This document shows, one piece after another, positions 9,749 through 51,861 of a DNA stretch of 64,000 nucleotides (position 1 is its first letter; every line of letters begins with the position of its first letter). The notes beneath the pieces were generated by a model. That model did not search any database. It saw only the letters and a list, made by a program, of their open reading frames with translations, and had not been told where the DNA came from. The stretch is from positions 62,001 through 126,000 of the IMG/VR virus record IMGVR_UViG_3300050821_009835; one strand, given 5' to 3'. The position numbers were made by a program, and so were the translations under genes.

Positions 9749-9791
9749 AATTCAAACAAAAGTAAAAATTCAAATAAAAACGGAGATTAAA

Positions 9792-11624: not shown

Positions 11625-11628
11625 GACC

Positions 11629-12414
11629 ATGAATGAAGCTTTAGCAATTCTGTCACCTAACCAAGCAGTTTCGAAGCGGGTGTTAAGAACACTGGTGATT
11701 GGACAAATAGTAATCTTTGTCCTTTACTGGGCGTTCTTAACACCCGCCGTAATACCAAAACCCGCTGAAGTACTCGAGTCATTAAAAGAACTTTGGGGTA
11801 ATGGGCTGGTTATGGAGTTGATAACAAGCCTTTCATTGTATGCCGAAGCATTGTTATGCGCAACTGTTTTTTCAATGCTTCTAGCTTACGCTTCAACCAT
11901 AGCATTCTTTAAGCCTGTAGCCAACTTTTGGGCAAAGCTACGCTTTCTCGGGTTAGTGGGGCTGCCTTTTCTTTTCACTCTCTATGTACAAGGAGCGCAC
12001 AACTTAAAACTAGCACTTCTAACATTCTCAATCTCGGTGTTCATGATCACGTCCATGCTTGATGTGGTGGACCTTATTCCGAAGGAAAAATATGACTTGG
12101 CTAGGACACTGAGAATGAACGAATGGCAGGTGCTTTGGGAAGTAGTAATCCTGGGTAGGATTGATGTCTGCTTTGACGTTATCAGGCAAAACGCAGCCAT
12201 CGGATGGATGATGCTCCCTATGATCGAAGGATTGTTCAGATCTGAGGGTGGTATTGGGGTGCTCCTAGATACCCAAAGTAAATATTTCAAACTATCAGAG
12301 GTAGCCGCTCTTCAAATTGCGATATTAATGCTCGGGCTAGGGCAGGATTACTTGATTGGGGTTATAAAGGGCTGGACTTGTCCTTACGCCAATCTGCTTC
12401 TGGAAAGAAGATAA
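11629..12414 (+). CDS. ABC transporter permease (NitT/TauT type)
   Basis: About six hydrophobic segments; EAA-like loop YDLARTLRMNEWQVLWEVVI; SEGGIG. Confidence 0.88.
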   Translation: MNEALAILSPNQAVSKRVLRTLVIGQIVIFVLYWAFLTPAVIPKPAEVLESLKELWGNGLVMELITSLSLYAEALLCATVFSMLLAYASTIAFFKPVANFWAKLRFLGLVGLPFLFTLYVQGAHNLKLALLTFSISVFMITSMLDVVDLIPKEKYDLARTLRMNEWQVLWEVVILGRIDVCFDVIRQNAAIGWMMLPMIEGLFRSEGGIGVLLDTQSKYFKLSEVAALQIAILMLGLGQDYLIGVIKGWTCPYANLLLERR

Positions 12415-12416
12415 CA

Positions 12417-13076
12417 GTGACAGCAAAACTATTGATGATTCTAACTCTCTTTGTTGGCCTTAGCTACGGCCAAGAAGTCATTATGAATCAACCCTCTGCC
12501 GATGTACCAAATCAAGGTGGGGTATTCTTGAGATTTGACTCTTTTTACACGCAGCACCCCGCCTATTTTTCCGGGATATTCAATACGGCGGTGGGATTAG
12601 GTTTTAACGCCGAAACGTCGTTCAACATCGCCGATGCCACTCACGAATCAAGGGTCTTTGTCCCAGGATTTAAATGGCAAGTGTGGAAGAAAAATAACCT
12701 GATAGCTTATGTTGGTGACCAAATCATCGTACCCAACAAAGGTAATGCAGGTAATAATTCGTATGAGGCTGTAGCTTGGTCAACGGGCAATCTAAGATTT
12801 ACGGGTGGTTCGTTTCAGTCTCATAACAGTGTCCAGATGGGCAACAGAGCAGGGGCATTTGCCGGGGTTGAATGGACCACAAGGACATTTAGAAATGGGT
12901 GGACTTTGATGCCAGGCATTGACTGGGCCTCGGGAGCAGGTTCTAACGGGTATTATAGTCCAGGTCTGTCTTTCATGCACAAATCCTTTTTCGTATGTCC
13001 GGGCTACATGATTGGTAACCCTGGAAATAAATTTGGAGCACATCAATCCTTTGTAATGATAGGAGTAACACTATGA
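12417..13076 (+). CDS. Secreted beta-rich protein, candidate outer-membrane barrel
   Basis: Signal peptide (AKLLMILTLFVGLSYG); alternating aromatic/Gly strands; C-terminus SFVMIGVTL. Confidence 0.5.
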   Translation: MTAKLLMILTLFVGLSYGQEVIMNQPSADVPNQGGVFLRFDSFYTQHPAYFSGIFNTAVGLGFNAETSFNIADATHESRVFVPGFKWQVWKKNNLIAYVGDQIIVPNKGNAGNNSYEAVAWSTGNLRFTGGSFQSHNSVQMGNRAGAFAGVEWTTRTFRNGWTLMPGIDWASGAGSNGYYSPGLSFMHKSFFVCPGYMIGNPGNKFGAHQSFVMIGVTL

Positions 13077-13249
13077 AAGCAAATCTGTTAATCTGCACTT
13101 GCGGGGATTGTCTACACTGGGAACTTCTCCAGCAATCAATCGTCTGCAAATCCTGTGGCATAGAATTTCCCATCCCGGGACTCGGCAAATTCATTCAGGA
13201 ACACGTTGACAAACACGATGCTTTGGCCTGGAAAGAACACGAGAGATAA
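13073..13249 (+). CDS. Small Cys-rich protein (58 aa)
   Basis: CTCGDC...CKSC; ATGA overlap upstream, abuts the ATPase start. Read by hand. Confidence 0.6.
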   Translation: MKANLLICTCGDCLHWELLQQSIVCKSCGIEFPIPGLGKFIQEHVDKHDALAWKEHER

Positions 13250-14086
13250 ATGCAGCATTGCCCTTACAATACGGATTGTTCAGGGTGCGTCTCATTTGAA
13301 GACACTCTGCTTGACGTTTCCCATGTTGGCCTTTCCTACGGCGACAAAGTAATTCTTCGCGATGTGGACGTCAAAGTCCAAAAGGTTAAAAGACGTTGCC
13401 ATATTCAAGGGCAGGTTGTAGGTTTCCTTGGCCCGTCGGGTATCGGCAAAACTCAACTTTTCAGAATCATGGCGGGTTTGAACAAACCGACCTCTGGTGC
13501 TGTTTTTGTGAACTCCCATCACGACCCTGTTCACGCCGGAATGGTGGGTGTTGTCTCTCAAAACTACACACTATTCGAGCATCGTACAATTTACGGCAAT
13601 TTGATGCTCGCCGCCGACAAAAAGTACAAGGATGATCATGAGAGGAAAGAAAAAGTAGATAACTATCTCAACATGTTTGAGCTGTACGACAAGAAACTAC
13701 TGTATCCGGCTCACCTCTCAGGAGGTCAACGCCAGCGAATCGCAATTGTCCAACAGCTACTTTCTAGCGACCATTTCATTTTAATGGATGAACCATTTTC
13801 TGGCCTTGATCTCGTAATGCTAGAAAAAGTTTGCAAGTTGATCGTGGATGTTTCGTGCTTAGATGAGCTTAATACTATCATTGTGGTTACCCACGACATC
13901 ACAGCGGCAGCGAGTGTTTCCGATCATTTATGGCTGATGGGTCGTGACGCAGGCTTACCGGGAGCTAGGATTCAAGAAAATTACAACATGGTCGACTTGG
14001 GATTGTGTTGGCAAGAAAATATCACCACACGTCCTGATTTCATCGATTTTGTGCGGACTGTAAAAGAGAGGTTCCGAACGCTATGA
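13250..14086 (+). CDS. ABC transporter ATP-binding protein
   Basis: Walker A GPSGIGKT, signature LSGGQ, Walker B ILMDE, H-loop VTHD. Confidence 0.95.
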   Translation: MQHCPYNTDCSGCVSFEDTLLDVSHVGLSYGDKVILRDVDVKVQKVKRRCHIQGQVVGFLGPSGIGKTQLFRIMAGLNKPTSGAVFVNSHHDPVHAGMVGVVSQNYTLFEHRTIYGNLMLAADKKYKDDHERKEKVDNYLNMFELYDKKLLYPAHLSGGQRQRIAIVQQLLSSDHFILMDEPFSGLDLVMLEKVCKLIVDVSCLDELNTIIVVTHDITAAASVSDHLWLMGRDAGLPGARIQENYNMVDLGLCWQENITTRPDFIDFVRTVKERFRTL

Positions 14087-14229
14087 AAAGAATGATTATT
14101 CTGTCGGTTTTGATCTTAATGGCCCTCTTCGTAATCGTCAATTCATTTTTCGTCGTTAAAACTGGATTGGCTTTGTTTGTCCTGGGTTGTATCGGTGTTG
14201 CAGTATACGTAAGTAGCGGACGAAAGTGA
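14083..14229 (+). CDS. Small two-TM membrane protein (48 aa)
   Basis: MKRMIILSVLILMALFVIVNSFFVVKTGLALFVLGCIGVAVYVSSGRK; ATGA overlap with the ATPase stop. Confidence 0.6.
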   Translation: MKRMIILSVLILMALFVIVNSFFVVKTGLALFVLGCIGVAVYVSSGRK

Positions 14230-14231
14230 TA

Positions 14232-14584
14232 ATGGACATCACGCTCAAGACCGATATTCCCGGCTTCGTGCTAAATCTTCATACAGAAAATGGCAAAGGT
14301 GTCTTATCCTGGATGAAGGATAGAGAAGCACTGATTCGCATGTTTCTCCAATCCAGAAGCTGTTGAGATTCTAGAAAGAGAATTTCGGGCAGATTTAATA
14401 ACGCAATGACAAGAAAATTTGGGGAACCACCGAAGTCCCAGATCTCACTGAGATTGTCTGTATATTTCATGGTAAGCAAGGTAAAAACGCCTTAACCCTA
14501 TTTGTCCCTGGTGAAATCTGTATACATGGAGCAATGATTCCCTACTGTTGCGATATTATGGCAACTTGTACTTGCAAATCATGA
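14232..14584 (+). pseudogene. Possible doubly frameshifted gene
   Basis: Three staggered open frames (14232-14366, about 14335-14409, about 14402-14584). The last lacks an early start yet ends in an ATGA overlap with a 34-codon ORF at 14581. Confidence 0.3.
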
Positions 14585-14713
14585 AAAACGACCTTGATCC
14601 CTTCCATAGAATCTATGGAACATCAGGTGTCCGTCCAATCCCCTTCGAGGAAGAGTCTAAGATTGTGGAATCTTCAAAAAGTTGACTCCGCAACCCAAAT
14701 AGAGGGCTGCTAA

Positions 14714-15421
14714 ATGAATTCACGAATCGCCAAGAAATCACCTGAAGAATCCAGATTCACTCAAATGATGACCGCTCAAGGATGGATGCTTACGGGTGGC
14801 AATAATGTGTGGTTGATCTTCAAGAAAAAGGGCGTGCCTGGCGAGATAGTTGTCACTCGTGGAACTAAAGAATGGGCTTATGATCGTTCTGAAGATGTAG
14901 ACGCTGATCCAGCAGCACAGGGTAAAGGTTTTCAATCTCTGCAAAAGGCTCTACCCACAATTCAGAAAGCCAAAGCTATACACGCTGATTTGGAAGATGA
15001 GGAGACCAATCCTCTTCCTGCTCCTTTTAGGCGAGAAGGACCTAACGTGCAACGCATTACGGGGACAGATCACCAAGGACATGCACAGTTGGGCGATGCT
15101 CAAAATGTTTTAAACTTCCTCCAAGCTAATGGCCCAAAACTCCCACAGCAAGTAGCCGAAGCATTCGGATGGTCGTATGAACAAGCCTATGGGATGCTAG
15201 AACACCTGCGTGCTGAGGGTAAGATAGGCATTAAGCAGATGCGCTATTACGTCAAGCAGGCCAGTCGGTTCCGTTTTAAAAGCAAGATCCTTTACCGCAA
15301 AACCAAGCCAGTCAGCATATTCCAGAGTGAGAACAAAACGATAAAAGAGGGCGGTCCGCAAGGCGACGACATCTCTCGCAAATCTGACGGCGATTACCCT
15401 AAAATGCGTCGCTCACGGTAG
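14714..15421 (+). CDS. Multi-domain protein with winged-HTH-like segment
   Basis: LPQQVAEAFGWSYEQAYGMLEHLRAEGKI; segments bounded by RIAK, KAKA and KQAS. Confidence 0.65.
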   Translation: MNSRIAKKSPEESRFTQMMTAQGWMLTGGNNVWLIFKKKGVPGEIVVTRGTKEWAYDRSEDVDADPAAQGKGFQSLQKALPTIQKAKAIHADLEDEETNPLPAPFRREGPNVQRITGTDHQGHAQLGDAQNVLNFLQANGPKLPQQVAEAFGWSYEQAYGMLEHLRAEGKIGIKQMRYYVKQASRFRFKSKILYRKTKPVSIFQSENKTIKEGGPQGDDISRKSDGDYPKMRRSR

Positions 15422-15433
15422 TATCTAGGCAAC

Positions 15434-15937
15434 ATGAATGTTCAAACAACCTCTGTGCTGCGTCTTGAGAACGCACTCCTCTTAGCAACTAAAGCCCATT
15501 ACGGCCAACTCGATAAAGCCGGGCAGCCCTATATCCTGCATCCAATTGCGGTGATGGAAATGATCCGAAAAGAGTTTGCCGAACACCCCAAAAAGATTCC
15601 AGCGGGTGTGACACTAGACGATCTGCTGATCGCCGCACTACTCCACGACACAGTCGAAGACACTGAAGTTACACTTGACCAAATCGATCAAGAGTTCGGC
15701 CCGGTTGTTCGCGAAATTGTGGATGGTGTGACACGACGTCGTGACTCTTGGAAAGATCATATTGGCGACGAGAATTACATAGATTTCATTTACCGCGCCA
15801 AACGACAGCCCGGCTCGCGGATCGTCAAAACTGCCGATCTTCACCACAACATGAGTCGTATTCATAACTTGCCGCCATCAGAACAAGGCATCTTGAATCG
15901 GTATCTCCGAGCGGAAAGGATTCTGAACGATGAGTAG
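15434..15937 (+). CDS. HD-domain hydrolase, SpoT/Mesh1-like (small alarmone hydrolase type)
   Basis: HYGQ, PYILHP, AALLHDTVEDT, VKTADLHHN. Confidence 0.88.
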   Translation: MNVQTTSVLRLENALLLATKAHYGQLDKAGQPYILHPIAVMEMIRKEFAEHPKKIPAGVTLDDLLIAALLHDTVEDTEVTLDQIDQEFGPVVREIVDGVTRRRDSWKDHIGDENYIDFIYRAKRQPGSRIVKTADLHHNMSRIHNLPPSEQGILNRYLRAERILNDE

Positions 15938-16362: not shown

Positions 16363-17568
16363 ATGAGCACAATGACTACCCCTGTAGACCAGCGCATTGT
16401 CAACCTGAATCAGCAGCTCATTGAAGCCGCCGACGCTTATTACAAAAAAGCCTCTCCCATTATGTCTGACGTGGCATTCGACGCCAGTGAAAAAGAATTA
16501 AAACAGCTGGTTGCAGCCTACCCTCTGTATGCTTCACTTGCCACCTATCTACAGAAAGTCGGCTCTGACCTGAAGGCCGTTTCTGGTCGCACTCCTCACC
16601 GTATCCCGATGCTGAGCATCGAAAACATGTACACTGAAGAAGATTTCCTCGCTCAGTATGATCGTTTTGGTGGCGTCCCGGTTGTGATTGAACCGAAATT
16701 TGATGGCGTAAGTATTTCCATGACCTACGTGGACGGTGAACTGACCAAGGCGCTGACTCGCGGGGATGGTACCAGTGGCGAGGACATGACCGCGCAGGTT
16801 CGCTGCACCGAAATCCCCACCTCTCTGGGCAAGGTTCTTTCGAGGAGCAACGGCGAGCCCGTGAAGGTCCCCGCGCTGGTTGAAATTCGCGGCGAACTGG
16901 TCATGCACGAAACGACCTTGAAGGCTCTGAACGCCAAGTATGCCGCATCCGGCCAGAAGACCTACGCCAACACGCGCAACCTGACCGCTGGCACGATGAA
17001 GTTGAACCCGGCCAAGTATGCGGACACGATCCGCGAGCGCAAGATCACCATTCGCCCTTGGGACGTTATTGCTGACCAAGTTCCTGACAGCCGCATCGAG
17101 CGTCTCCGCATGATTAAAAATGCGGGGTTCAGCGAACCAGAAGGTATCTTGCTCACCGACCGTAGCCAAGTGATTCCGGCGCTGCGCAAGATGCTGGAAC
17201 TGAATAAAACTGCCGATATCTACCGCGACGGCGTAGTGATGAAGGTCGACAGCGTGAAAACAAGTCGCTCATTAGGACTGGCCTCCAAGTACACAAACTA
17301 TCAGACATGCTTCAAACCGCAAGGTGACAAGGGAGTTACTTATCTACGTGAAGTCGTGTGGCAAGTGGGAAGAACAGGTCGCATTTCTCCAGTGGGAATT
17401 GTAGATCCTATAGTCTTGGCTGGGGCTACTATTACTCGAGTCAATCTCAACAACATTACTTGGATTCGAGCTATGCGGATAAAGCTAGGAAGTCGGATTT
17501 CTTTGCTTCGCAGTGGGTCGGTAATTCCTGTAGTAGAACGAGTCTTGGATGACGATCCCTCAAAATGA
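16363..17568 (+). CDS. ligA: NAD+-dependent DNA ligase, N-terminal part (adenylation + OB domains)
   Basis: YY..D..FD domain Ia, MLSI, EPKFDG (KxDG), RNLTAG, DGVVMK, GRTGRISP, RSGSVIP; stops before the Zn finger. Confidence 0.93.
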   Translation: MSTMTTPVDQRIVNLNQQLIEAADAYYKKASPIMSDVAFDASEKELKQLVAAYPLYASLATYLQKVGSDLKAVSGRTPHRIPMLSIENMYTEEDFLAQYDRFGGVPVVIEPKFDGVSISMTYVDGELTKALTRGDGTSGEDMTAQVRCTEIPTSLGKVLSRSNGEPVKVPALVEIRGELVMHETTLKALNAKYAASGQKTYANTRNLTAGTMKLNPAKYADTIRERKITIRPWDVIADQVPDSRIERLRMIKNAGFSEPEGILLTDRSQVIPALRKMLELNKTADIYRDGVVMKVDSVKTSRSLGLASKYTNYQTCFKPQGDKGVTYLREVVWQVGRTGRISPVGIVDPIVLAGATITRVNLNNITWIRAMRIKLGSRISLLRSGSVIPVVERVLDDDPSK

Positions 17569-18499
17569 AATTCATTCGATGGCCCAGTTCTTTGCAGCGG
17601 TAATACTTCGCCAAATTCTGGGCTTTTTCTAACTGAAATATGTATTCACTCTTTACCTCAAAAATCCAGTTAAGGCGAGGCACGTAGAAATCTGGATAGT
17701 AACGTCGTTCTGTCCCATCCACATCAGTGTAAAAGATAGGTAACAACGAAGTCATTTCAAAATCAAAATCTTCTTCTCGAAATCCCTGTTGTAACAATTG
17801 CTCCAGAACTCCCGATTCATACCCAGCTAGAACGAGTACCCGACCCGATGGCAACCGAAATTTTTTGTGCTGATTCTTAGCCGCTGTAGACATGACCTTT
17901 CTGGCAATTTCATGGTTTTGCATTGGATGCCTTACTCCATAATTTTCAATAAAAGTCGCCACCGATTTTGCCTGTACAGCCTTTGTTTTCAAAGGATGCC
18001 CGCCAAATCTAGAAAGCCAAGTGGCTTGAGTCTTCGCGAGGATCTCTGGCACCTTTGAGGGGTGGTCCATTCCATACTTCTCTACCATAGATTGGTGAAT
18101 AGCATCTTGAACGATTTTGACAGAAAAGGGATTCTCAAAACCGTATCTTTCCAAACAAGTTTGCTTTCCTCTAGCCCGGATCCTTGGATTCTGGAAACCA
18201 ACGTCGTGAGTCTCTCTCATCGTCTTCTGTTTCTCGGCGTCTTTCATCCAGAGATTTCTATCTTTAAGCAACGCGGGGCAGTTTGCGAGGTTGTCCACGC
18301 AACATAATAATTGATTTTTGAATTGGAATCTTGCGATTCCACCACAACCGTAGGCACAAAAACCGGACCCTACATAGAGTTGTGGCTTACTCTTAGTCCA
18401 TGTTTTTCCTTTCAATTTGTCGATCGGACAATGAGCACGATGGGCATTGTGACTTTGGCTATTCTTGAATTCTCTGCCACATTCTGAACAAACTAGCAT
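17471..18499 (-). mobile_element. Homing-endonuclease-like gene (YG.ENP repeats + PD-(D/E)xK) splitting ligA
   Basis: N-terminal C2H2-like motif, repeated [EK][RK]YG..[NH]P units, YYPDFY...IFEVKS; SD AAGGA upstream. Confidence 0.8.
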
Positions 18500-18567
18500 A
18501 CTAATTCCTTTGTTACAAATGGATTAGAAAGCTACCCGATTTTTGAGCATTAGTGGTAGTATTACGA

Positions 18568-19500
18568 ATGATGACCACTACTGAAATTATCCCTCCTAAA
18601 AACTGCCCTGAATGTGGCCAAAAGTTAGATGTCTTTGAAGACAGCACAGAAGATGCAACCGAACACATTTATTGCACCAACACAGATTGCAAAGGTCGTG
18701 TGGTTGGGCATTTTTGCTTCGTGGGCGATCGCGAGGTTTTAGAGATTGACGGCCTTGGGCCGGAACTCTCAGCCAAACTAGTCACGGATGACTATGCACG
18801 AAACGTGGCTGAACTGGTAGAGTTTGCTGACGAAATTAACGATGCCATCACTAAGAATGGTGAAGGGCCAGTTACTAAATCACTCCAGAAAGAGGGTTTC
18901 ACCAGCGCCGTCGTAAAGATGGCGAAGTCGGTTCAACTGGCGAAGCATGCTTCTTGGGAGCGTTGGATTGCTGCACTGGGCATACCGATGGTTTCGGACA
19001 CGCTGGGTAAGATCATCGCAAAGGAGATGAAACTGACCGCTGATGATATGGTGAATCTAGTCAGCAAGTTCCGAGACTTTCTAAATTTGACCATCGCTGG
19101 CGTAGGACCAAGTAAGAAAGCTGCTCTACAGGATTGGCTCAAGACACCAGCTAATATCGACATCATCCAGTCTCTGGCGAAATCTGGTGTCAAGCCGACT
19201 CCGCTGGCTGCACCAAAAAACGTGAATGGACCGCTCAGGGATGTCGTTTTTTGTATCACAGGCGGGTTTCCTAACTTTGGGGAACGTACCGATATTGAAT
19301 CAAAATTATCCTCTCTCGGAGCTACCGCAAAAAGCGGAGTATCTAAAAAAACAAATCTCCTCCTTGTCGGGGAAGATGCTGGCGGCACCAAATTGAATGC
19401 CGCTAAGAAACTAGGTGTACAGCAAGTCGGAGAAGACTGGCTCCAGAGAGTCTATACTGAGCATGGTCTCCAAACTTGTGGTAATAAGTTTCCTATCTAA
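18568..19500 (+). CDS. ligA: NAD+-dependent DNA ligase, C-terminal part (Zn finger, HhH, BRCT)
   Basis: CPECG...CTNTDC, HhH motifs IDGLGP / ALGIP / IAGVGP, BRCT FCITG...VSKKTNLLLVG. Start is ATG 18568 or 18571. Confidence 0.92.
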   Translation: MMTTTEIIPPKNCPECGQKLDVFEDSTEDATEHIYCTNTDCKGRVVGHFCFVGDREVLEIDGLGPELSAKLVTDDYARNVAELVEFADEINDAITKNGEGPVTKSLQKEGFTSAVVKMAKSVQLAKHASWERWIAALGIPMVSDTLGKIIAKEMKLTADDMVNLVSKFRDFLNLTIAGVGPSKKAALQDWLKTPANIDIIQSLAKSGVKPTPLAAPKNVNGPLRDVVFCITGGFPNFGERTDIESKLSSLGATAKSGVSKKTNLLLVGEDAGGTKLNAAKKLGVQQVGEDWLQRVYTEHGLQTCGNKFPI

Positions 19501-20278
19501 TCACAAAATTGAATTTGAATCCGGCCTTCAAACAGGCTTCGCGCTTCCTCAGATTATCTTCTTTCTGAACCATGAACGTCCACATTGATTTAACTTCAAT
19601 GAGCCAATTCTGTTCTGGGATGAAAATGTCTGGATAATACCGCGCCTTCTTACCATTACTTCTAGTGTACCAAATTGCCGGCATCTTTGTCGGATCAGTT
19701 TCTATTGAACAAACGGCTACCCCGCTCTTCAGAAGTTCCTTTAATACTTTACCTTCTGCTCCTTGAAACACAAAAGTTTTGCCCTGCAACTCTACGGTTT
19801 TCTTGCTCAATCGACCTTTCTGGAGAATCCGAAACATCATTGGATTCTGGAAGTGATGAGGGAAGCCGTAGTGTTTCATAAATGTTGCCACCTTCTTGGC
19901 TTGTATATCAGAGTTTTGGCTGGGGTTTTCCACACCATAGTTGGCTTTTAAGGTGGCGCGTATTTTCTTTTGAACTGTCTTTGAAGCAAAGGGATTCTTC
20001 ACTCCATATCTTTCTAAATTAGTGGCGGCAACCCTGTCTTGAAGTTCCTTAGTCTTATAAGGGTGATCAACCCCGTACCTCTCAATATTATGCTTTTTAC
20101 GCTGTGCCTGAACGTCAGGATTTTGATTAGGGTGGGGCACACCAAATCGTTCGGTGCAGGTCTTAATGGTTTTCTTTTGTATACCGGGGCAAGCGTTAGG
20201 AGATGGAGCACAGTAAATAGCCCCATTCTTCATTTGAAACAATCCAGTCCTGCCACAACCTTTACAATTATGCATCAT
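19493..20278 (-). mobile_element. Second homing-endonuclease-like gene of the same family
   Basis: ERYGVDHP / ERYGVKNP / NYGVENP repeats; YYPDIF...LIEVKS; GAGG SD upstream of ATG 20278. Confidence 0.8.
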
Positions 20279-20352
20279 AGGAGTCCTCACTAGATATGCA
20301 GAAAGTTGAATTACCTCTTTCGACGGTAAACACCGTAGTATAAGACAAGGCA

Positions 20353-20664
20353 ATGTACGGTATCTGCCCAACTATCGAAGGATTTCACAGCCGTGAGCCG
20401 CACGAACAATTTGATGGGTGCAGCGGCTGGACGCCTGTGCCGCCGAACCCAGATCAGTCTCTGCGTGAACGTTTTCACCATGTGACGGTACTGGCTGGAT
20501 ATCAGAATGAAGGTCCCAGCCGAATTGTCGCTCAGTGGTACGATTTCCTGATGAATCAGGGGCGTGAAAGCTTTATTAAGATGCTTGAACGTTATGAACG
20601 AAGCAATGGTAACCCCATGGATGATCCTGAACCGGAAGCAAGCCTAAGCAAGCCTATGCTGTGA
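20353..20664 (+). CDS. Hypothetical protein
   Basis: ORF track; preceded by TAGTAT motif. Confidence 0.65.
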   Translation: MYGICPTIEGFHSREPHEQFDGCSGWTPVPPNPDQSLRERFHHVTVLAGYQNEGPSRIVAQWYDFLMNQGRESFIKMLERYERSNGNPMDDPEPEASLSKPML

Positions 20665-25619: not shown

Positions 25620-27550
25620 TTCATTTCTAGACCCTGAAATACATCTGAAGAAATCTCCCAGGCAAGACGTAAACGTGGGGCAACCAGCCCGTTCGGATGA
25701 TTGATATCCCAGTTACTTACTTCTCCCGTTGGAGGCAGCGGCTCCGTAATACTTGGTGTACCCGGCTGAAGCAGCATAATCCATCTATACGAAGGAATAT
25801 AGGCTTGACCAATACCAACCATCCGCCAAGTCAACGTTCCATCTGTAGTCGTGCCATTGACATTGATAGCCCAAGCTGAGACTGAAGCACTGCCGGGGTC
25901 AACTTCAAATTCCCCGTCTACATTGTTCAGCGTAATTGATTCATCAGTAGAAGCCAAACAGGAAAAGACGCCGTTGTTACCAGGATTTGTGAAACCTGTA
26001 ATCGTGAATGTTCTCCCCAGATAGGCATTGTCGCCCCCGCCTGTGATATTACCTAAATAAGTTGTGCTGCCGTTAAACTCCACTTGGCCCTGAGATGATG
26101 TCAATGTGAAATTAAGCGTAGGTGGATTCGGGGTGGAACCAGTCATACCATAGTACCCGCTGGTTCCAAACAACGATGGCGGACTATTCGAGCCTGTGCC
26201 AACGACCATCTGAGTGTTCCCATTTGAATCCATGATGATCTGGCTTTCAAAGAAATTTGTGTCAGGTGCCCAATTTGCTATTCCGAGAACATAGTCTCCG
26301 TTCAAGCCAGGTACATAGGCTGATTGTAGTGTTGGAGTTACAAGCCCAGATCCGGCTTCTGCCGCAGAAGGAACGGGAGCGGGCAATTGCACAACCATCT
26401 TAAATGTTCCCGAGTACGGCGGGTTGCCCACAGAAGGAGGATTACCTGTTCGGATCGTAGTCGTATCGCTGATCTTACCTGTGATATCGAATATGTTCCC
26501 ACCATTTACGCAGCCTGTAATAGTGACTTGCATGCCATCATGGATTGCATAATTAGCATTTGTGTACGTAAAAGTTGCTAAAGTTTCAGTTGCAACCGTG
26601 TTAACAATATTGAACGTGATTTCCGGCAAAGTTACCCATTGGGATTCTGGTATACTCATAAGCGGACCAGAGAATTGGCGTCCGTGAGCGGCAACTGTTG
26701 TTTGAGGATTCACGGGGTTCAAAATAGGAGCTACAATCAACATCGGGTTGAATGGTGGTTCTTCAACAATCCTAAAGATAATCGATAAATTGTCTGCAAT
26801 TCCTGGCTCAGTGGGAGACCACATATCCTGCGGAAAGTAACTAATGTCTTCCGTGTAGGCATCAATGTTATCGTTTTCGCCGAATACTACAATGAATTCA
26901 AGCCCCACATGGGCGGGTTTAGTCAAATCAATGGCTGTATACAATGAACTAACAACCAGCTGAAGCTGATTGAGAGACTCTATGTCTTCCAGCGGATTGC
27001 TTCCGCCCACATTGATAGAAACTTGTATTGCATTACGATCAGACTGATCGTACGGGCTGGGGGGCGGTAATAGAGTTGAGGCATCAGAAGGGATAAATTT
27101 GTAAAGCTCTTGCACAACCACTACAAGGCCAGTGTATGCAAAGATGACATCTTGAATCGCCTTGACCGTAGCACCTTCTTTGTAGGCTTGAAGTAGGGCG
27201 ACAAGCATGTTACGATAGGATAAATCAGATTGTCCGTCCGGGAGATCGAAGACCCCAGTTGAAGGATAAGCACTACTGATAAACAGCGGGTCAGCCCAGC
27301 GACGTTTAATGTCAGATGGAGTTAAATACTGAGGATTTTTAGCGATTAGATCGTAAGCATAGAAATACTCGCATCTAGCAATTTCTTGCGCTACAGCACG
27401 AAGAGCCACGCCCCATATAGATTGATCGTTCCTAGTGGCATAAAAATTGGCCGTGTTGTTGAAGAGGCGTCGAGTACTAGCATCTTCATACAATAAAAGA
27501 TCAGTTCTGTTCGGGGTGTATAAGACATCAGGTTGAACGTATTTAGTCAT
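25616..27550 (-). CDS. Baseplate wedge / tail protein I-like protein
   Basis: LQAYKEGATVKAIQDVIFAYTG...TKPAHV N-terminal domain, then T/S/N/P-rich beta domains; GGAG SD at 27550. Confidence 0.6.
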   Translation of the reverse strand: MTKYVQPDVLYTPNRTDLLLYEDASTRRLFNNTANFYATRNDQSIWGVALRAVAQEIARCEYFYAYDLIAKNPQYLTPSDIKRRWADPLFISSAYPSTGVFDLPDGQSDLSYRNMLVALLQAYKEGATVKAIQDVIFAYTGLVVVVQELYKFIPSDASTLLPPPSPYDQSDRNAIQVSINVGGSNPLEDIESLNQLQLVVSSLYTAIDLTKPAHVGLEFIVVFGENDNIDAYTEDISYFPQDMWSPTEPGIADNLSIIFRIVEEPPFNPMLIVAPILNPVNPQTTVAAHGRQFSGPLMSIPESQWVTLPEITFNIVNTVATETLATFTYTNANYAIHDGMQVTITGCVNGGNIFDITGKISDTTTIRTGNPPSVGNPPYSGTFKMVVQLPAPVPSAAEAGSGLVTPTLQSAYVPGLNGDYVLGIANWAPDTNFFESQIIMDSNGNTQMVVGTGSNSPPSLFGTSGYYGMTGSTPNPPTLNFTLTSSQGQVEFNGSTTYLGNITGGGDNAYLGRTFTITGFTNPGNNGVFSCLASTDESITLNNVDGEFEVDPGSASVSAWAINVNGTTTDGTLTWRMVGIGQAYIPSYRWIMLLQPGTPSITEPLPPTGEVSNWDINHPNGLVAPRLRLAWEISSDVFQGLEMN

Positions 27551-28191
27551 TAGGATCTCCCCATGACCCAACCATCTGCACTGTGGCTTTCTATGTCCCC
27601 CGGTTTTATCAATAGACTGAAAATGCCATTATTGACCCATTTTCTTCCAAGAATAGGGTTTTTTCGACGACTGTTACCAAGACCGATTTTTCGTCCGTGT
27701 TCAGCAGTTTTGGGAATTCCTTTGAATCTTTTCTTGGCTATAGCAGCCCGCTCTTTTCGAAGATGAGGATTTTTAGCCCACCATTTTGTTTGTCCCTCTC
27801 TTATTTTTTGACAGAATTCTTCTGATCTTGGAATATCAGTTAAGGCAGTACGAATTTTCTGCTTGGATAATTCAGTATGGGAACGCCCCGCAAAACTGGG
27901 GATATCCTCACCTCCCATTGTTATGTTGTATCCAATCTCTCTGTCATACGACTGATGAAGAACGATAAAAAAGGTTTCCATCGCGCAGAGCTCTTTAAAA
28001 CTACCCGCTTTGTGTAATGTTTCTGTTCTAAACCCTTCTGGCCCATAAAATCGCAAGGCTTGATAAAAATAACCAGGAGTGCCAATTCGTGCGCAACATT
28101 GGTGCTCTTTCCAACGAGTCTCTTCAGATTTAGTTGTCCTGCCAATATACACCTTGCCGTTAATCACGTTTGTTATCTTATATATTAGCAT
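27550..28191 (-). mobile_element. GIY-YIG homing endonuclease with NUMOD3-like repeats
   Basis: LIYKITNVINGKVYIGRT; GYN; HTELSKQKIR, KTAEHGRKI. Confidence 0.9.
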
Positions 28192-45923: not shown

Positions 45924-48900
45924 TTAGAAATTAAGGAGATCAGCCTGCTTCAGTGCTTTCAGAATCGCATCAGCATTCGGCGGTAGAGTAACAATTAAAG
46001 TGCCTTCGTCGTTTCCAGTCATATAGACTTTTCCATCTTTCTCTCTAAGGCGTGGGTCAAAGATGTGATAATCGTCAGCAGCATCTATCCCTTTACCTGT
46101 GCTCGGGAAGAACACATACTTGAATGTATCTACAGTAATGAAAGCCCAAGGGGATAAAGTGTCTTTCTGCCCAGTAGAGGGAATACTAATCGTTGCAACC
46201 TGCTTGGCCAAGCTGACCGGGAGATAAACTCTACCCGACTTAGACATGAAATAGAGAAACTCCTGGTCCGGATGCTCTTTCAAATAAGTACCCACCTGCT
46301 GAGCCTCTTGTTCTGCTCCCTTGCTATACCGTTTTTGAGCTTTTTCTTTTCCCACAGCAGGTAGTATCTCCATACCCGCCTGTTCAATTTCAGACAATGG
46401 CACAACTATACCGCCCGAGCTTTGATATTGGAGAGTATAGCTACCTGCAGGAAGTGTCACTACTTGAGCAGAGTAAGTTCGGCGAGTGATGCTAGACCCT
46501 GTTTGTAGAAGAACTGGAACAGGCTGAGTAATCTTTATCTTGGTGCGAGGAAGAGCGGCGTCTGGCACCTGATTTAATCTTTTTCCAATTTCATCTGTGT
46601 ATGAGACAAACGTGCTCTTCTCTTTCGAGATAGTTGGTAGAGGGAGTCCCGCATATTGTTCAGCCGTTATCTGTTCAATGTTTGGAGACCACATTAAACC
46701 GGAACCAGCCTTGTATTTGTATGGTTTCAGATCTACCCCCAATGCAGAAGCCTGTTTTTCAAATTCAGCCATCCAAGAAGGATTAGGTAACCCATAGAGT
46801 TGTAAACCCGCTAGCATACTAGATCTACGGATTTGTTGCTCATCCACAGCTGCTTTGTAGAACGAGAATGAAGCTGTTTTTCCGACCTCCTTGAACAGTT
46901 TCGGGTCCCAGAACACTTTGTGCTGATCTTTGTATTTTCCAGTGTTCACGCATTCCGTCTTACCTGGGCCTTCCGTATGGGATACAACTGTTTCTGCAAC
47001 GGGAGTACCATCAAAAGTAAAAACGAGCTTCTCCCCTGGCAAGCAGACGATGGGATGACGGAACGCCCAGAATTCTAGATTACCTTCAGGCGGTTCTTCC
47101 CAAAAATGTTCACGAGACGCCTTGGGAACTTCGATCTTGAAAGAGCGTTTCGTCATCCGCCCTGCCTTTTTAGAAGACTCCTTCGCGAGTTCCGCAGGAT
47201 CTAGATCCAACTTAAAAATCTCCACATGATCCGGCGTGAAGACTACACCCGGGATCTTCTTCCAGCTGTAACCGCCCCCGGTTTCATAGACGTTATGCGG
47301 AATGTCCACAGCATAAACTTCTTTACCGAACTCATTGTCCATGTAGACTATGACATAAGCATGATCATCACCCGGTTGTCCGCCTTCGGTCACGCTGCAC
47401 TCAATCGGGACCCGATCATAGACGACCCCGGTTATGGCCTGAGCGATCTCGTCACAGATTCCACCTGTTCCGTTCTCAGGATCCTCACCTGCTTCATTCT
47501 GGTCCCAAGCATCATAGATCTTCTGCGCTTCCGCTGCCATCTCCAGTGTAGCTTCTTGCAAGTAGTGAAGAAGCACAGTCCGGTTACGGGTGGCGGTATG
47601 CTCAAGGCATCCTCCGGACAGGCAAGCGACGCAGACCTTCGCAGCGATCCGAGAAGATGCGGCAGTCTTATGAGACAGAAACTTCTGCCACTCCACGCCA
47701 AATTCCTGAAGTGGGAGATTATCCGGCAGCTCTGTTAGCCAAAGATACAGAGCAACCGGGTCGACGTCCTTGGGCTTGATCACGTCATAGTGGTTGTCCA
47801 TGACACGAATGAGGCCGTTCTTGAGAGAAAGTCCGACGACGTTACCGAAAGTCACGCGCTGAAGTTCTCTATCAATGTCCGCGTTTGCAGTTTTGGAAGC
47901 ACTAAATTTTACAAATGCCTTATCCTGAATCTGCCTACCGTAAGCAATATCGTCCAGTATAGCACCGTCGTAACCTTGTTTCTGGAGTACCCGAACCAAC
48001 TGACTCACTTCCGTGCCGTGAAGATTGCTATCGAAAATCGAGGCAGGCGTATTCATCTCATTGTTAATGCCCAATTTAGAAGCTTCCGCTACGATGACAT
48101 CCCAAGGTGCAGGATTACTAATGGATATTTCTCCCTCGTTTAATTGCCCGCCCGTTCCGAAACGATCATTGTACATCTCAACATAGGACTCTGCCATTTC
48201 CTTGTTAGGAGTCCAATAAGTCACGGCCCCGCCTGGTTTGCTGTTGCCTCCGTTATACATCTTTGAAGCAATTTTGGACGCCAAGGTTAAGCTGTAATCC
48301 TTCTGCCCATGCGTTGCGCTGGGTGTCTCTTCAACTGGATGAGTCTTTTTCAAATCCTCCCAAATCTTTCCAGATTCTCCAATGCGATAGTTGGCTGGAC
48401 TCTCTACTTTCTTGACACCGTGTTCTTTGAGAAAGTCAAACCCCATCCTATAGAGGTAGGAGCCATATCCCTGCCGACGAAAATCGTATTCAACCCAAAC
48501 ATTATGGACAGCTGCGACAGTCCCTGGAGAATACACAATAAATTGAATCTTGCCAATGTAGACGCCCTGGAGATTTTTAGCCTCGAATGTATGGATTATT
48601 GCCCCAGACTTGACTCCAGCCTCTTTCTCAGTATGCTCAATCTGAATTTCTGAAGGATTTGCCGGCGCGGTTGCAGTTTTTCTGGTTCCAATGTATGCTT
48701 GGATGGTTTTATCACCGCGCATCTTAGCCGCATCCCGACGATGATAGCCGTCAACGACGTATTTATTGCTGCCAATAACGATTGGGGGTAGCGCGGTCTT
48801 GCGTTGCGAGTATCCCCAAGCCACTGGAGGATGTTTACCCTGCCCCCAATGGATGCTGGGATCATTAATATCTATGGTCTGAAGAACGTACTCATCTGCT

Positions 48901-51374
48901 TCAGCTATCCATTCTGGATCTTCAAATGGTTTTCGTTCCCACCCCTTTTTATGGAGAGAGTTAACATACTCGAGCATTCCATCGGGGGTTAATAAACTTG
49001 GATATCGTTCATCGTTCTCCTTAGCTCGTTTGTTTTCTTTGCGCCCCCAAATTTCGATCGGCAGATTCCTTCCGATTATCAAAGCCGCTATAGCACGATG
49101 TTGTCCATTCAAAATAACCAAACGACCATCCTTTAACCGAGAAACAGGCACAGGCGGAGGGATGCTTCCCGCTTTCCACATATCCGCGTATTCTTGAGCT
49201 TTTTGTTTACTTCCCTCTGGGTTGTTTAATTCTTCTTGCGTATAAAGTTGACTTGGGTCCATTGAAGTCGTTTCTAGAAGTGTCAAACGACCGGCCTCAA
49301 ACTCCAACAAATCGTTGAAAGATTCATCTGTCGGCTCCATGTATTTTAAAGAATCATGACCCGAATGGAAAGCTGCTTGTTTATGACTTCCAAACGGAAC
49401 CCCATTACGCGCTCCATTGGCTCGAGAGAGCACGAGAGAGCCGCAGGAGAAGGAGATACCCTGCGCCCAATCTGACCCCTCGTACTTGTGAGCAACCTCT
49501 GGCTTCACGTAAGCGATAGTTACATGGGGTTTATAGGGAAAATCATCTTTACGATTTCCTATAGCAGAATCGACCAATTCATGGAGGACATGTAAATCTG
49601 CAGCATGAGCTTCGGCAACAATAGGAACTCCTCCGGCTTCAGATGCTGTAAAAGCATGCATTTTACCCAATACGACAGAAAAATTGTGCTGCTCACCTAC
49701 AGCCCAGGCCAGTTTTTCTAGATTCTCTTCCACACCAAACTTTACCGTAATGTGAGGATCATCTTCAATCCCCTTCACATCTAGATCCTCGGCAGGTATA
49801 CGGCGGGCTACAGCGAAGACATCGTCTCGTGCTGGACCAGATAATCCGATAATCACAAGAGGCTTCTTATCCTTGCCCAAATACTTAGCCATTCTGAGGT
49901 CGTAGCCCATCCTGCTGTTGCTGAAAGCAATTCTGACATCAGGGTATTTTTCGCGCAGACGCTCAAGAACTGGACGTATCTTAGTCTCCCCTTCAGAAGA
50001 GAAGGTGGAGATTTTCAATTCATGACGACCAGAATCTTGTACAAACTTTACAGCAGCTTCGAGTAACTGGCGAGCATACCCTCGTCCTTCATAACCTTTA
50101 CGAGTCGTGATATGCATTAACCAAAACTGATCTGGATTGTTTGGGTTAGGGTAGAGTTCACAATCTGCTACAATCTTGCCATCGTCAAGGATATCAAAAT
50201 GGGGTTCCTGACGAAGATCAGAATGACGAAGATACATTGTCTCTTCCATCAAACGGTTGTCTTCTTGCTGGAATTTGCGAATCTGTTCACCCTTCATGAA
50301 AACAGGTGGAGAGGCTGCGGTTTTAGCTGCGGTTACAGTCTTTAATTTATCGGGAGGATTTTGCCAAGCACCCCCATTTTCTTTCCACCCGATAATCGAG
50401 ACTGTAGTACCCTCTATTAAACGAATTTCTGCTTCTTCAGGGGCAGCTAGATTGCAATAAGCTGTTGCCAACCAGTCAACCTGACCTGGGACAACTGTTC
50501 CTTTAAAAACTAAAGCTGCACCCCCCATAGCATTGTAAGGCTGGGCTGCATTTTCTTCCCAAGACCAAAACTTACCGAAATTATCTGGATTTATCTGATT
50601 TATGGAAGCAGAAATAGCTCGATAAACGGGTAACCGATTTGTCCTGGCGAGCTCCTTAAGATGCTCTTCAACAGGGGCATAGGAAAGTTCTAGAAACTGC
50701 TCTGCTGCAACCTCGAGTTGCTCTTCGGGTAAGTTTTGATTGATATTATTTTCCCGAAGATACTGATGAAATTCTCCAGAAGGAATTGTATCCCAAAAAC
50801 CGCCGTAATTTAAGACTTGATCAAAGCTGGGAACACCCGAGGCTGCTTTAGATTCAATCCCAAACTCCTCGGGCATCATCAATTCAAGAGGGATAAATGA
50901 TTGAGTCCCTTTCTGCTTCTCAGGCTGATTGACATATCCGTTAGTCTCTTCTACGAAAGTTTCGTCTCGTCCGGGAGTCTGTTTGTGGGTTGCGGTCTTC
51001 CTAGATTCCCGAATAGGACTTCCCATTTCCGTTTGATAGATGTTAATCCGTTTTATCAATTCTTTAGGAATTTTCTTACCGGGGTAAACCCAAGTTACAT
51101 TATCCTCTAAAAGGACTATTCCCTCCTCCAACTTAGAAGGGTCTACAACAACGATAGCAATTTCATCAACCTCAGCATATCTGGATCCCCAATGAGCAGC
51201 ATAATCTAAATCCTCAGCGAAGTAGATCCCTCCGTTTGGGACATAAAGACCGTCGCGCTTGATTTTTTCCACATTTTCCACCGGGGTGCCATGGAAAATT
51301 TCTGGGGGGAAATACTTAGCGACGACGCCTTTTGGCGCGACACTTAGCCCCGGCTTTTGCAACAAAGGATTCAT
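45924..51374 (-). CDS. Giant polyvalent protein (about 1816 aa): ART x3, GNAT x2, 2H phosphoesterase, ParB-like x2, papain-like, unknown domains
   Basis: FHGT; YRA...FWSW...EEAE; GYEGRGYA; HITV/HVTI; NGQHR; DGYHR; FRRQGYG; YNG...YWT...GYDG; GICD...DHAY...VDI. Start uncertain (51374 or 51392) and overlaps the JAB gene end. Confidence 0.85.
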   Translation of the reverse strand: MNPLLQKPGLSVAPKGVVAKYFPPEIFHGTPVENVEKIKRDGLYVPNGGIYFAEDLDYAAHWGSRYAEVDEIAIVVVDPSKLEEGIVLLEDNVTWVYPGKKIPKELIKRINIYQTEMGSPIRESRKTATHKQTPGRDETFVEETNGYVNQPEKQKGTQSFIPLELMMPEEFGIESKAASGVPSFDQVLNYGGFWDTIPSGEFHQYLRENNINQNLPEEQLEVAAEQFLELSYAPVEEHLKELARTNRLPVYRAISASINQINPDNFGKFWSWEENAAQPYNAMGGAALVFKGTVVPGQVDWLATAYCNLAAPEEAEIRLIEGTTVSIIGWKENGGAWQNPPDKLKTVTAAKTAASPPVFMKGEQIRKFQQEDNRLMEETMYLRHSDLRQEPHFDILDDGKIVADCELYPNPNNPDQFWLMHITTRKGYEGRGYARQLLEAAVKFVQDSGRHELKISTFSSEGETKIRPVLERLREKYPDVRIAFSNSRMGYDLRMAKYLGKDKKPLVIIGLSGPARDDVFAVARRIPAEDLDVKGIEDDPHITVKFGVEENLEKLAWAVGEQHNFSVVLGKMHAFTASEAGGVPIVAEAHAADLHVLHELVDSAIGNRKDDFPYKPHVTIAYVKPEVAHKYEGSDWAQGISFSCGSLVLSRANGARNGVPFGSHKQAAFHSGHDSLKYMEPTDESFNDLLEFEAGRLTLLETTSMDPSQLYTQEELNNPEGSKQKAQEYADMWKAGSIPPPVPVSRLKDGRLVILNGQHRAIAALIIGRNLPIEIWGRKENKRAKENDERYPSLLTPDGMLEYVNSLHKKGWERKPFEDPEWIAEADEYVLQTIDINDPSIHWGQGKHPPVAWGYSQRKTALPPIVIGSNKYVVDGYHRRDAAKMRGDKTIQAYIGTRKTATAPANPSEIQIEHTEKEAGVKSGAIIHTFEAKNLQGVYIGKIQFIVYSPGTVAAVHNVWVEYDFRRQGYGSYLYRMGFDFLKEHGVKKVESPANYRIGESGKIWEDLKKTHPVEETPSATHGQKDYSLTLASKIASKMYNGGNSKPGGAVTYWTPNKEMAESYVEMYNDRFGTGGQLNEGEISISNPAPWDVIVAEASKLGINNEMNTPASIFDSNLHGTEVSQLVRVLQKQGYDGAILDDIAYGRQIQDKAFVKFSASKTANADIDRELQRVTFGNVVGLSLKNGLIRVMDNHYDVIKPKDVDPVALYLWLTELPDNLPLQEFGVEWQKFLSHKTAASSRIAAKVCVACLSGGCLEHTATRNRTVLLHYLQEATLEMAAEAQKIYDAWDQNEAGEDPENGTGGICDEIAQAITGVVYDRVPIECSVTEGGQPGDDHAYVIVYMDNEFGKEVYAVDIPHNVYETGGGYSWKKIPGVVFTPDHVEIFKLDLDPAELAKESSKKAGRMTKRSFKIEVPKASREHFWEEPPEGNLEFWAFRHPIVCLPGEKLVFTFDGTPVAETVVSHTEGPGKTECVNTGKYKDQHKVFWDPKLFKEVGKTASFSFYKAAVDEQQIRRSSMLAGLQLYGLPNPSWMAEFEKQASALGVDLKPYKYKAGSGLMWSPNIEQITAEQYAGLPLPTISKEKSTFVSYTDEIGKRLNQVPDAALPRTKIKITQPVPVLLQTGSSITRRTYSAQVVTLPAGSYTLQYQSSGGIVVPLSEIEQAGMEILPAVGKEKAQKRYSKGAEQEAQQVGTYLKEHPDQEFLYFMSKSGRVYLPVSLAKQVATISIPSTGQKDTLSPWAFITVDTFKYVFFPSTGKGIDAADDYHIFDPRLREKDGKVYMTGNDEGTLIVTLPPNADAILKALKQADLLNF

Positions 51375-51861
51375 AGTTCTTCTTTCGTTCAACTGCTAAT
51401 GGACGAAGGCACGGCCAATAGCTCACAACCGTCTTCCGCCTACTACCATCTTTTGGAATTTGAATAGCACAAACAGCCAAAATCGATTCTTGCGTGTTCA
51501 AACTGTCCCGGATATCGTGTTCGCTTAAAACCGCGTCGTCGCAATCGGGGTGAGTATGAATCGTCCCCAAGAACTCGAGTTTGATTCTTCGACCAGATAC
51601 AGAGTCATAGATCTCCGTGTCCTTGGCATCATCCTCATGCCGATCTAGTTCTAGGTCTTCATCAATGCAGACTACTTTACGAGTGTTGGTTTCCTTTTTA
51701 TTGATGTCGCATTTAATGAAGGCACAAATGTACACTGTGTCTCCACGGACATAACCCCATAAAGCCGAAATGGTTTCTTTGGGGGCATAACGCAACGCTC
51801 GCCGACGAAAGCGCCCTTCTTCCCTGCCGTCAACAACGACTTTCAAGAAAGGTGCGATCAT
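51316..51861 (-). CDS. JAB/MPN+ metalloprotease
   Basis: Catalytic E (KETIS) and HxHx7Sx2D motif (IHTHPDCDDAVLSEHD); SD AAGGA. Confidence 0.85.
   Translation of the reverse strand: MIAPFLKVVVDGREEGRFRRRALRYAPKETISALWGYVRGDTVYICAFIKCDINKKETNTRKVVCIDEDLELDRHEDDAKDTEIYDSVSGRRIKLEFLGTIHTHPDCDDAVLSEHDIRDSLNTQESILAVCAIQIPKDGSRRKTVVSYWPCLRPLAVERKKNYESFVAKAGAKCRAKRRRR

Follow-up and report, generated by a model that had tools for sequence, protein, structure and literature searches.

The question raised by one gene in a 64,000-nucleotide stretch of viral DNA (positions 62,001 to 126,000 of IMG/VR record IMGVR_UViG_3300050821_009835, hereafter the window) is how a single chain made of many enzymes could be activated. 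The gene lies at 45924..51374 on the minus strand and encodes 1,816 amino acids (aa) followed by a stop codon (45924-45926). Its product, here called the polyprotein, fits the class of polyvalent proteins described in 2017 by Iyer, Burroughs, Anand, de Souza and Aravind (PMC5512222), who predicted that such proteins are injected together with the DNA. The class comprises phage- or plasmid-encoded chains that each combine two to 15 unrelated domains. A phage is believed to deliver its polyvalent proteins ahead of any others, and the activation of a 200-kDa chain of a dozen enzymes has until now been an open guess. In the polyprotein a short linker stands at nearly every junction between modules, and the same motif is found in head proteins encoded on the same contig. 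A cut signal common to head protease, scaffold and capsid would offer a concrete and testable mechanism for releasing the enzymes.

An earlier note on this DNA had described the gene as a 1.8-kaa string of at least 11 unrelated modules in one open reading frame (ORF), separated by a K-x-A linker, and had inferred that the product is packaged in the head and cut at that linker. The ORF proved to be single and intact (45924..51392, minus strand, with the first ATG at 51374), and its product could be divided into 13 modules, or about 13 independently folding units (Table 1). The ten linkers quoted in that note were all recovered, and they occupy 10 of the 12 module junctions. Scored with the pattern K[TAQIK]A[ASTNG], the motif occurs 11 times in the polyprotein against 0.98 expected, a count reached in 0 of 3000 shuffles, and an unbiased scan of tripeptides returned KTA as the most over-represented of all (7 versus 0.53 expected). 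Its density of 6.06 per 1000 aa is about 12 times that of the other 42 ORFs of the window (0.48 per 1000 aa; 16,503 aa). The eleventh match, at K1540, lies off-junction inside a confident helix of the AlphaFold2 (AF2) model and, judged from that model, is a chance occurrence.

The placement of the motif at the module boundaries was also evident from homology. BLASTP blocks shared with the relatives P0002-P0004 begin or end at the motif (126-179, 350-677, 1033-1158, 1158-1405 and 1407-1497), and in more distant relatives the homology of a module starts or ends at the motif Lys. Ends of high-scoring segment pairs fell no more than 8 aa from a motif in 49 of 137 cases in the polyprotein, where 15 were expected (3.2-fold). 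The AF2 model that covers aa 1158-1816 was built from a 93-row alignment and reaches a mean predicted local distance difference test score (pLDDT) of 72. In it K1236, K1402 and K1499 all fall in low-confidence segments, and the KKAG-1402 and KTAS-1499 linkers appear as dips of 5 and 11 residues between domains with pLDDT of about 90. The model of aa 1-1200 (7-row alignment, mean pLDDT 46) was too poor for the linker test or for a fold search and gave moderate confidence for the GNAT, 2H and second GNAT domains only.

The signal is conserved well beyond the closest relatives. In a set of 34 large proteins (62,970 aa; one per 50%-identity cluster, the four closest left out), KTA was again the top over-represented tripeptide (104 versus 17.2 expected) and TAA the second (88 versus 25 expected). 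Segment-pair ends again clustered within 8 aa of the motif in these 34 independent relatives (430 of 2257 versus 121 expected, 3.6-fold). A logo built from 126 sites reads K-T(59%)-A-[A 53% / S 29%], its flanks being practically unconstrained, and no preference for Glu was seen at logo positions -8 to +11. The prohead proteases T4 gp21, phiKZ gp175 and SPN3US gp245 cut after Glu (L/I-x-E, S/A/G-x-E, A-x-E). The logo agrees with the view that the site specificity here is unlike that of the Glu-directed proteases.

Modules are shuffled among the relatives with break-points at the motif, a pattern that could also result if the motif were the by-product of a conserved DNA linker promoting cassette exchange. 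Against this, the motif is encoded with both AAA and AAG, with all four ACN and all four GCN codons in roughly genome-wide proportions, and no DNA word is conserved. Because the synonymous codons of the motif vary freely, selection on the linker acts at the protein level. This variation excludes a DNA recombination linker, and we leave next to no probability to such an origin of the motif.

In homologs of the modules that stand alone, the motif is no commoner than background (0.51 per 1000 aa), and therefore it belongs to the junctions and not to the domains. It is also present at the InPase/RelA-SpoT junction of the neighbouring genes in loci L004 and L008, and the corresponding 525-aa protein of the window has degenerate linkers, NKTGA (about aa 146) and LKTSAS (about aa 258). 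The occurrence of the motif at the InPase/RelA-SpoT junction points to a protease acting in trans. The relative P0127 carries 13 copies of the motif; the tail block of the same phage has a single copy in 12,102 aa.

The earlier note looked to the prohead protease of the phage itself, and to the propeptide junction of its capsid protein, for the same motif. The polyprotein is encoded on the 340,335-bp contig Ga0210388_10000011, where its exact protein sequence is on record, and a search with the capsid protein of Tunturi_5, a cultured 308.7-kb myovirus of Tunturiibacter psychrotolerans X4BP1 (PMC11924767), located a head module on this contig at 259,980-280,939 (L097). The head-maturation protease homolog encoded there (299 aa) is 61% identical to Tunturi_5 gp331, which matches phrog_18299 'head maturation protease' (3.8e-13). 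It carries the motif at aa 7, 35, 41 and 266, that is 4 copies against 0.26 expected, on both sides of the conserved core. The 744-aa scaffold-like protein, whose gene lies between those of the protease and the capsid protein, has 6 copies against 1.65 expected, and K-T-A-G is found at aa 19 of the major capsid protein (LLKTAGGRQ). Amongst the other proteins listed in the head module, nine of 15 lack the motif and three carry one or two copies. The protein of 597 aa encoded directly upstream of the protease (L097:3920-5713) has two motif copies in its last 40 residues (DKTAACP and VKTASGC) and is possibly a portal or ejection protein with a C-terminal trim site.

The same distribution was found across the clade represented by the 161 IMG/VR contigs that the Tunturi_5 capsid protein retrieved. 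In the clade, 82 sites were counted in proteases (9.4 expected), 147 in scaffold-like proteins (43.2 expected) and 49 in capsid proteins (7.1 expected); three control families from the same loci gave 3 (6.0 expected), 3 (5.2 expected) and 0 (1.6 expected). Amongst 38 protease homologs the motif precedes the core in 32 and follows it in 28, and these sites are positionally conserved within otherwise variable segments adjoining the invariant core. The protease family has invariant His and Ser residues and matches phrog_18299 only.

These head proteins also bear on the possibility that the motif is never cut and serves instead as a docking or packaging tag for the scaffold or portal, or as a flexible spacer, so that one 200-kDa chain acts whole. 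There is precedent for transfer without cleavage in the N4 vRNAP and in several polyvalent proteins of plasmids (PMC5512222). A core of four residues between free flanks at nearly every junction is nevertheless the pattern of a protease site, the motif stands at either end of the protease core, a place where prohead proteases are known to autoprocess, and a spacer needs no fixed Lys and Ala. An uncleaved chain thus appears unlikely, although it is the least improbable of the alternatives considered here.

Tunturi_5 offers the same arrangement in a cultured phage. It has a tail block in common with the phage of the window (proteins of about 1,246, 1,969 and 1,239 aa) and encodes several polyvalent proteins with KTAA or KAAS at their junctions. 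Its head module includes gp331, gp332 and gp334, the last of which matches a major head protein family (2e-43). In the stretch scanned for the motif (131-309 kb), the head module has 18 copies against 3.7 expected (ratio 4.8) and the polyvalent proteins 28 against 6.8 (ratio 4.1), and the tail and non-structural proteins are motif-poor, with 14 against 8.4 (ratio 1.7) in the tail. Other unassigned proteins of the virion region reach a composition-corrected ratio of 5.1. Tunturi_5 gp224 (L013:17270-19336) contains two GNAT domains and ParB-like similarity and matches the polyvalent proteins P0105 and P0127; its GenBank label of 'portal protein' appears to be wrong. In another Tunturi_5 protein, gp348, three KTAS sites lie within the first 75 residues.

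A distant homolog of the protease, gp19 of Bacillus phage G (27% identity), was annotated as a head maturation protease in 10.1101/2024.12.16.628780. It has four sites against 0.26 expected, flanking the core, and the phage G portal gp14 (L101) has one site near each end. The K-x-A-[A/S] specificity may therefore belong to the whole phrog_18299 family.

The mechanism that we propose starts with a polyprotein that would be made late and would enter the prohead as a single chain. The 299-aa phrog_18299 homolog encoded on the same contig would recognise K-x-A-[A/S] and cut every linker, and the same protease would trim its own N- and C-terminal extensions and degrade the scaffold-like protein. 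The released small modules would remain trapped with the DNA and be ejected into the next host, where they would serve host takeover and counter-defence as a ready supply of acetyltransferases, a 2',3'/2',5'-phosphoesterase, ParB-like and ADP-ribosyltransferase (ART)-like enzymes, and others. Fusion would allow a single packaging event to load many enzymes, and cutting would allow small separate modules to exit through the tail and to act independently. The involvement of a prohead protease, as put forward in the earlier note, is well supported by computation through the motif in the flanks of the protease, in the scaffold-like protein and at the N-terminus of the capsid protein. From these patterns we infer cleavage at the motif, the position of the scissile bond, packaging and ejection, and the targets of the modules. 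Altogether, a packaged polyprotein cut at its K-x-A linkers by the head-maturation protease, with its products ejected, is in our judgement the probable explanation, held with considerable reserve; that the motif signals proteolytic processing is, taken by itself, considerably more probable than the full mechanism.

Several observations weigh against this mechanism. The support is computational throughout. The polyprotein contains no recognised head-targeting domain such as MuF, and its operon adjoins tail and baseplate genes and not head genes. Two further putative peptidases, JAB and BubE-like, are also conserved in this operon. No canonical motif is present at the GNAT/2H junction (about aa 500) or at the ParB/ParB junction (about aa 782, KRAK). 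For the proposed protease, there was no Pfam match for gp331 and no PDB sequence match for the family in a profile search. The presence of K-T-A-G near the start of the capsid protein agrees with the earlier expectation, but the site is ambiguous, as it lies in a segment conserved as a whole and need not be a cleavage site. Additionally, the non-structural proteins of Tunturi_5 show 7 copies against 4.3 expected, a background excess of about 1.6-fold.

A different source of the cutting activity could be the polyprotein itself, with the cuts at the K-x-A linkers made in cis or in trans by its Cys/His module (module 11), in the manner of RNA-virus polyproteins. This module is the best conserved of the chain, with 72% identity in P0002 and 60% in P0003, and belongs to a family of 656 representative proteins (E<1e-10) that are either free-standing (120-200 aa) or embedded in giants of up to 5,005 aa. 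It has the conserved motifs GGICD, GDDHA and VDIP, is modelled with pLDDT above 90, and places a Cys at the N-terminus of a helix and then His and Asp on consecutive strands, an order that fits a Cys peptidase triad. One relative weakly matches Transglut_core (1.4e-3). The 'papain-like' label given to aa 1240-1401 in the earlier note could not be confirmed by these means: the Pfam scan returned no family for module 11 itself, no significant PDB or BFVD fold match to any peptidase was obtained, and the best Foldseek hit, NlpC/P60, was weak (probability 0.10, E about 0.7). The distribution of the module also speaks against self-processing. Module 11 is common as a free-standing protein without the motif, the giants P0043, P0050, P0065, P0068, P0146 and P0152 possess it with zero motif copies, P0004 has junction motifs without it, and the head proteins that bear the motif have their genes in another part of the genome. 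We consider self-processing very unlikely.

The linkers could instead be cut by a peptidase encoded in the operon, either the JAB/JAMM or the DUF6527/BubE-like protein, acting in the producer's cytoplasm or following co-injection. Directly upstream of the polyprotein gene, the JAB gene is present in four loci (window, L004, L005, L008); the BubE-like gene is found two genes downstream in the window and in L004, L005 and L006. This synteny, the intact JAMM motif and the invariant Ser and several His residues of the BubE-like proteins count in favour of this reading. BubE is a Ser-His protease, and BubCD's JAB domain cuts the BubAB fusion (10.1101/2024.11.21.623953). The known substrates of JAB and BubE, on the other hand, have a ubiquitin-like fold ending in Gly, neither of which is found at these linkers. 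Furthermore, P0127, with its many motif copies, has neither peptidase within 10 kb, and cutting by an operon enzyme would leave the motif in the flanks of the head protease and in the scaffold-like protein unexplained. This alternative is therefore quite improbable, if somewhat less so than self-processing, and cleavage by the head-maturation protease is preferred.

As regards the operon itself, the two peptidase genes more likely encode counter-defence deconjugases. Together with InPase-RelA/SpoT and the 2H/Acb1-like domain, they look like a phage toolkit directed against defences that rely on ubiquitin-like conjugation (Bub, Bil, CBASS type II) or on nucleotide signalling. As in the BubAB/BubCD/BubE system (10.1101/2024.11.21.623953), JAB and DUF6527 genes flank a fusion protein; unlike in Bub, there is here no ubiquitin-like fold, E1, E2 or C-terminal Gly at the junctions, and no E1, E2 or Ubl matches were found in the operon. 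The JAB and polyprotein genes overlap by 59 nt (51316-51374), identically in L004 and L005. A programmed frameshift between them was considered and rejected, as it would need +1 with no -1 geometry possible; both frames are conserved, which leaves a simple gene overlap. A propeptide-like SERKIASGV at the start of a 1,303-aa ORF was likewise dismissed, since the L012 homolog shows the real start to be a downstream Met. A scan of the operon for promoters and terminators gave nothing above shuffles.

Part of what is described here was known already, namely polyvalent proteins and the processing of packaged proteins by prohead proteases; the new element would be the K-T-A-[A/S] junction signal. 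In the literature retrieved, no report of a K-x-A cleavage motif was found. The polyprotein resembles polyvalent proteins in that unrelated conflict domains (13 modules, including two GNAT, 2H and ParB-like) are shuffled in one phage chain, and InPase and RelA/SpoT, here in the adjacent gene, are also among the likenesses. The processing of polyvalent proteins was predicted to occur mainly by embedded zincin-like MPTase or C-terminal assemblin-like domains, and the word 'linker' is never used and no inter-domain signal is described in that work (PMC5512222). In contrast, the polyprotein has K-T-A-[A/S] at nearly every junction, in common with the head-maturation machinery, and neither an MPTase nor an assemblin-like domain, which are common but not obligatory in the proteins of PMC5512222, was found: there was no Pfam match to an embedded processing peptidase (zincin-like MPTase) at E<=0.1 in the polyprotein, and no assemblin-like fold match to the C-terminal module with Foldseek. 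One polyvalent protein has been detected in phi24B virions (10.64898/2026.04.10.717836).

The prohead proteases of T4 (gp21), phiKZ (gp175) and SPN3US (gp245) use a single short motif to trim themselves, break down the scaffold and cut proteins that are packaged (PMC5694885, PMC10052503, PMC7411985). The likeness lies in a short consensus found in protease, scaffold or internal, capsid and packaged proteins and absent from tail proteins, which here are motif-poor. The differences are that Lys and Ala are conserved here, with no Glu, and that cleavage in T4, phiKZ and SPN3US mostly removes propeptides, whereas here it would split one chain into more than 10 enzymes. In T4, the ADP-ribosyltransferase Alt and the internal proteins enter the head, undergo trimming by the prohead protease and, once injected, modify the host. 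These T4 proteins come from separate genes with their own targeting leaders; here many modules would share one chain. Another comparison is provided by the herpesvirus assemblin site, (V/L/I)-x-A followed by S. Both have Ala followed by Ser or Ala in a four-residue site of capsid maturation, and they differ in that the P3 residue here is Lys and not aliphatic. By analogy with assemblin sites, the scissile bond possibly lies after Ala.

The processing signal would make the mature products predictable from the sequence and would provide a tag for packaged proteins in thousands of uncultured jumbo-phage genomes, in addition to a candidate pair of protease and site with a new specificity. Since cultured Tunturi_5 has the same arrangement, and phage G has the same pattern around its protease, the prediction can be checked in culture. 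A broader proposition is that this large and mostly uncultured soil jumbo myovirus clade (at least 161 IMG/VR contigs, including Tunturi_5) uses a Lys-x-Ala-Ala/Ser head protease and that any modules placed between two signals are automatically packaged, released in the capsid and injected; on the sequence patterns at hand, we see this generalization as evenly poised between holding and failing. If true, such a packaging grammar would explain why the effectors are fused and why their order is freely shuffled, and Lys-x-Ala-Ala/Ser would add to the phage prohead proteases a class of specificity that has not been described for them.

Table 1. Modules and linkers of the polyprotein and genes of its operon (window coordinates)
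Feature	Position	Strand	Remarks
InPase + extra module + RelA/SpoT protein, 525 aa	51871..53448	-	First operon gene
Prok-JAB (JAMM) peptidase gene, 181 aa	51316..51861	-	JAMM motif intact
Module 1, aa 1-125	51000..51374	-	Possible H-Y-E type ART (FHGT motif), weak label; PARP 0.018, Tpt1 0.034, both sub-threshold
Linker K126-T-A-T	50988..50999	-	
Module 2, aa 130-175	50850..50987	-	Short peptide, 89% identical in P0002, motif on each side
Linker K176-A-A-S	50838..50849	-	
Module 3, aa 180-350	50325..50837	-	No Pfam match; homologous modules in P0109, P0018, P0105
Linker K351-T-A-A	50313..50324	-	
Module 4, aa 355-500	49875..50312	-	GNAT acetyltransferase; Pfam PF00583 1.4e-15 at aa 372-456; pLDDT 64-86
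Module 5, aa 503-664	49383..49868	-	2H (LigT-like) phosphoesterase; PF13563 4e-6 at aa 511-650; TIGR02258; weak Acb1 match
Linker K665-Q-A-A	49371..49382	-	
Module 6, aa 669-781	49032..49370	-	ParB-like; phrog_1033 8.3e-12 at aa 685-776
Module 7, aa 782-898	48681..49031	-	Second ParB-like; DGYHRR-type motif and homolog P0010 1890-2000, 1.2e-45
Linker K899-T-A-T	48669..48680	-	
Module 8, aa 903-1033	48276..48668	-	Second GNAT; PF00583 1.6e-7 at aa ~935-990
Linker K1034-I-A-S	48264..48275	-	P0010, P0008 and P0004 homology begins exactly here
Module 9, aa 1038-1160	47895..48263	-	'ART-like' label unconfirmed; homologs in relatives
Linker K1161-T-A-N	47883..47894	-	
Module 10, aa 1165-1235	47670..47882	-	No function assigned; from homology comparison with relatives
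Linker K1236-T-A-A	47658..47669	-	Within segment of pLDDT <50
Module 11, aa 1240-1401	47172..47657	-	Cys/His alpha+beta domain; papain/transglutaminase-like at best
Linker K1402-K-A-G	47160..47171	-	5-residue pLDDT dip, aa 1404-1408, between confident domains
Module 12, aa 1406-1498	46881..47159	-	Beta-rich, weakly ASCH/PUA-like; also a stand-alone protein of ~120 aa
Linker K1499-T-A-S	46869..46880	-	pLDDT dip aa 1500-1510; P0002 and P0003 end just before
Module 13, aa 1503-1816	45927..46868	-	Two sub-domains; stand-alone homologs P0014, P0038
Gly-rich protein, 138 aa	45499..45915	-	Position conserved
DUF6527/BubE-like protein, 121 aa	45134..45499	-	Last operon gene; invariant Cys cluster, Ser50, His83, His99

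Each module for which homologs were found recurs elsewhere, either as a separate protein or in another order. The functional labels assigned in the earlier note fared unevenly. The two GNAT domains and the 2H phosphoesterase were identified by Pfam hidden Markov model (HMM) matches. For the two ParB-like modules, the first was supported by its PHROG match, and the second by its DGYHRR-type motif and homologs. The ART labels could not be confirmed: the matches of the N-terminal module stayed below threshold, and neither the 'R-S-E ART' (aa 176-350) nor the third 'ART-like' module (aa 1034-1160) gave an HMM match. ART-PolyVal domains do occur in the relatives. PDB sequence searches with the whole protein and with the module 11 profile returned nothing, and Foldseek searches with the C-terminal model gave no match below E = 0.018 (BFVD) or 0.3 (PDB).

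Module 2 (46 residues, 50850-50987) is the best-conserved piece of the N-terminal half, with the stretch FIPLELMMPEEFGIE in common with P0002, and would come off as a free peptide if the linkers were cut. Module 12 gave repeated weak ASCH/PUA-like structural matches in PDB and BFVD (probability 0.2-0.84), and a homolog of it is fused to a NUDIX hydrolase in Tunturi_5 gp203. The stand-alone homologs of module 13, P0014 and P0038, begin with leaders of 7 and 14 residues followed by KQAAS, and these leaders resemble a T4-style capsid-targeting leader with a protease site.

The genome that carries the gene is that of a 340-kb soil jumbo phage, a myovirus of the clade of the Tunturiibacter phage Tunturi_5. 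A 38-mer taken from the gene had one match in the JGI metagenome collection, which was contig Ga0210388_10000011. A megablast search for near-identical cultured phages found none close at the DNA level, and tblastn with the whole protein gave Tunturi_5 as its sole match (5%); the later link to Tunturi_5 was obtained through the relative P0127. Hallmark genes of the phage in the window encode a baseplate-J protein of 1,567 aa, a He_PIG Ig-repeat fibre protein of 1,967 aa and a T5 A1-like product.

Other features of the window were also recorded. An auxiliary-looking block at 359-15937 on the plus strand encodes an HAD phosphatase, a thymidylate synthase and a 634-aa OmpA-domain protein, as well as ABC-transporter ATPase-like and permease-like proteins. 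An NAD-dependent DNA ligase is divided between two plus-strand ORFs, one N-terminal (16363-17568) and one C-terminal (18553-19500), and a homing-endonuclease ORF (17471-18499) lies on the opposite strand between the two halves (window 16363-19500). More homing endonucleases are encoded at 19493-20371 and 27550-28191 on the minus strand, and one of these, of GIY-YIG type, is inserted in the baseplate operon, directly after the baseplate-J gene.

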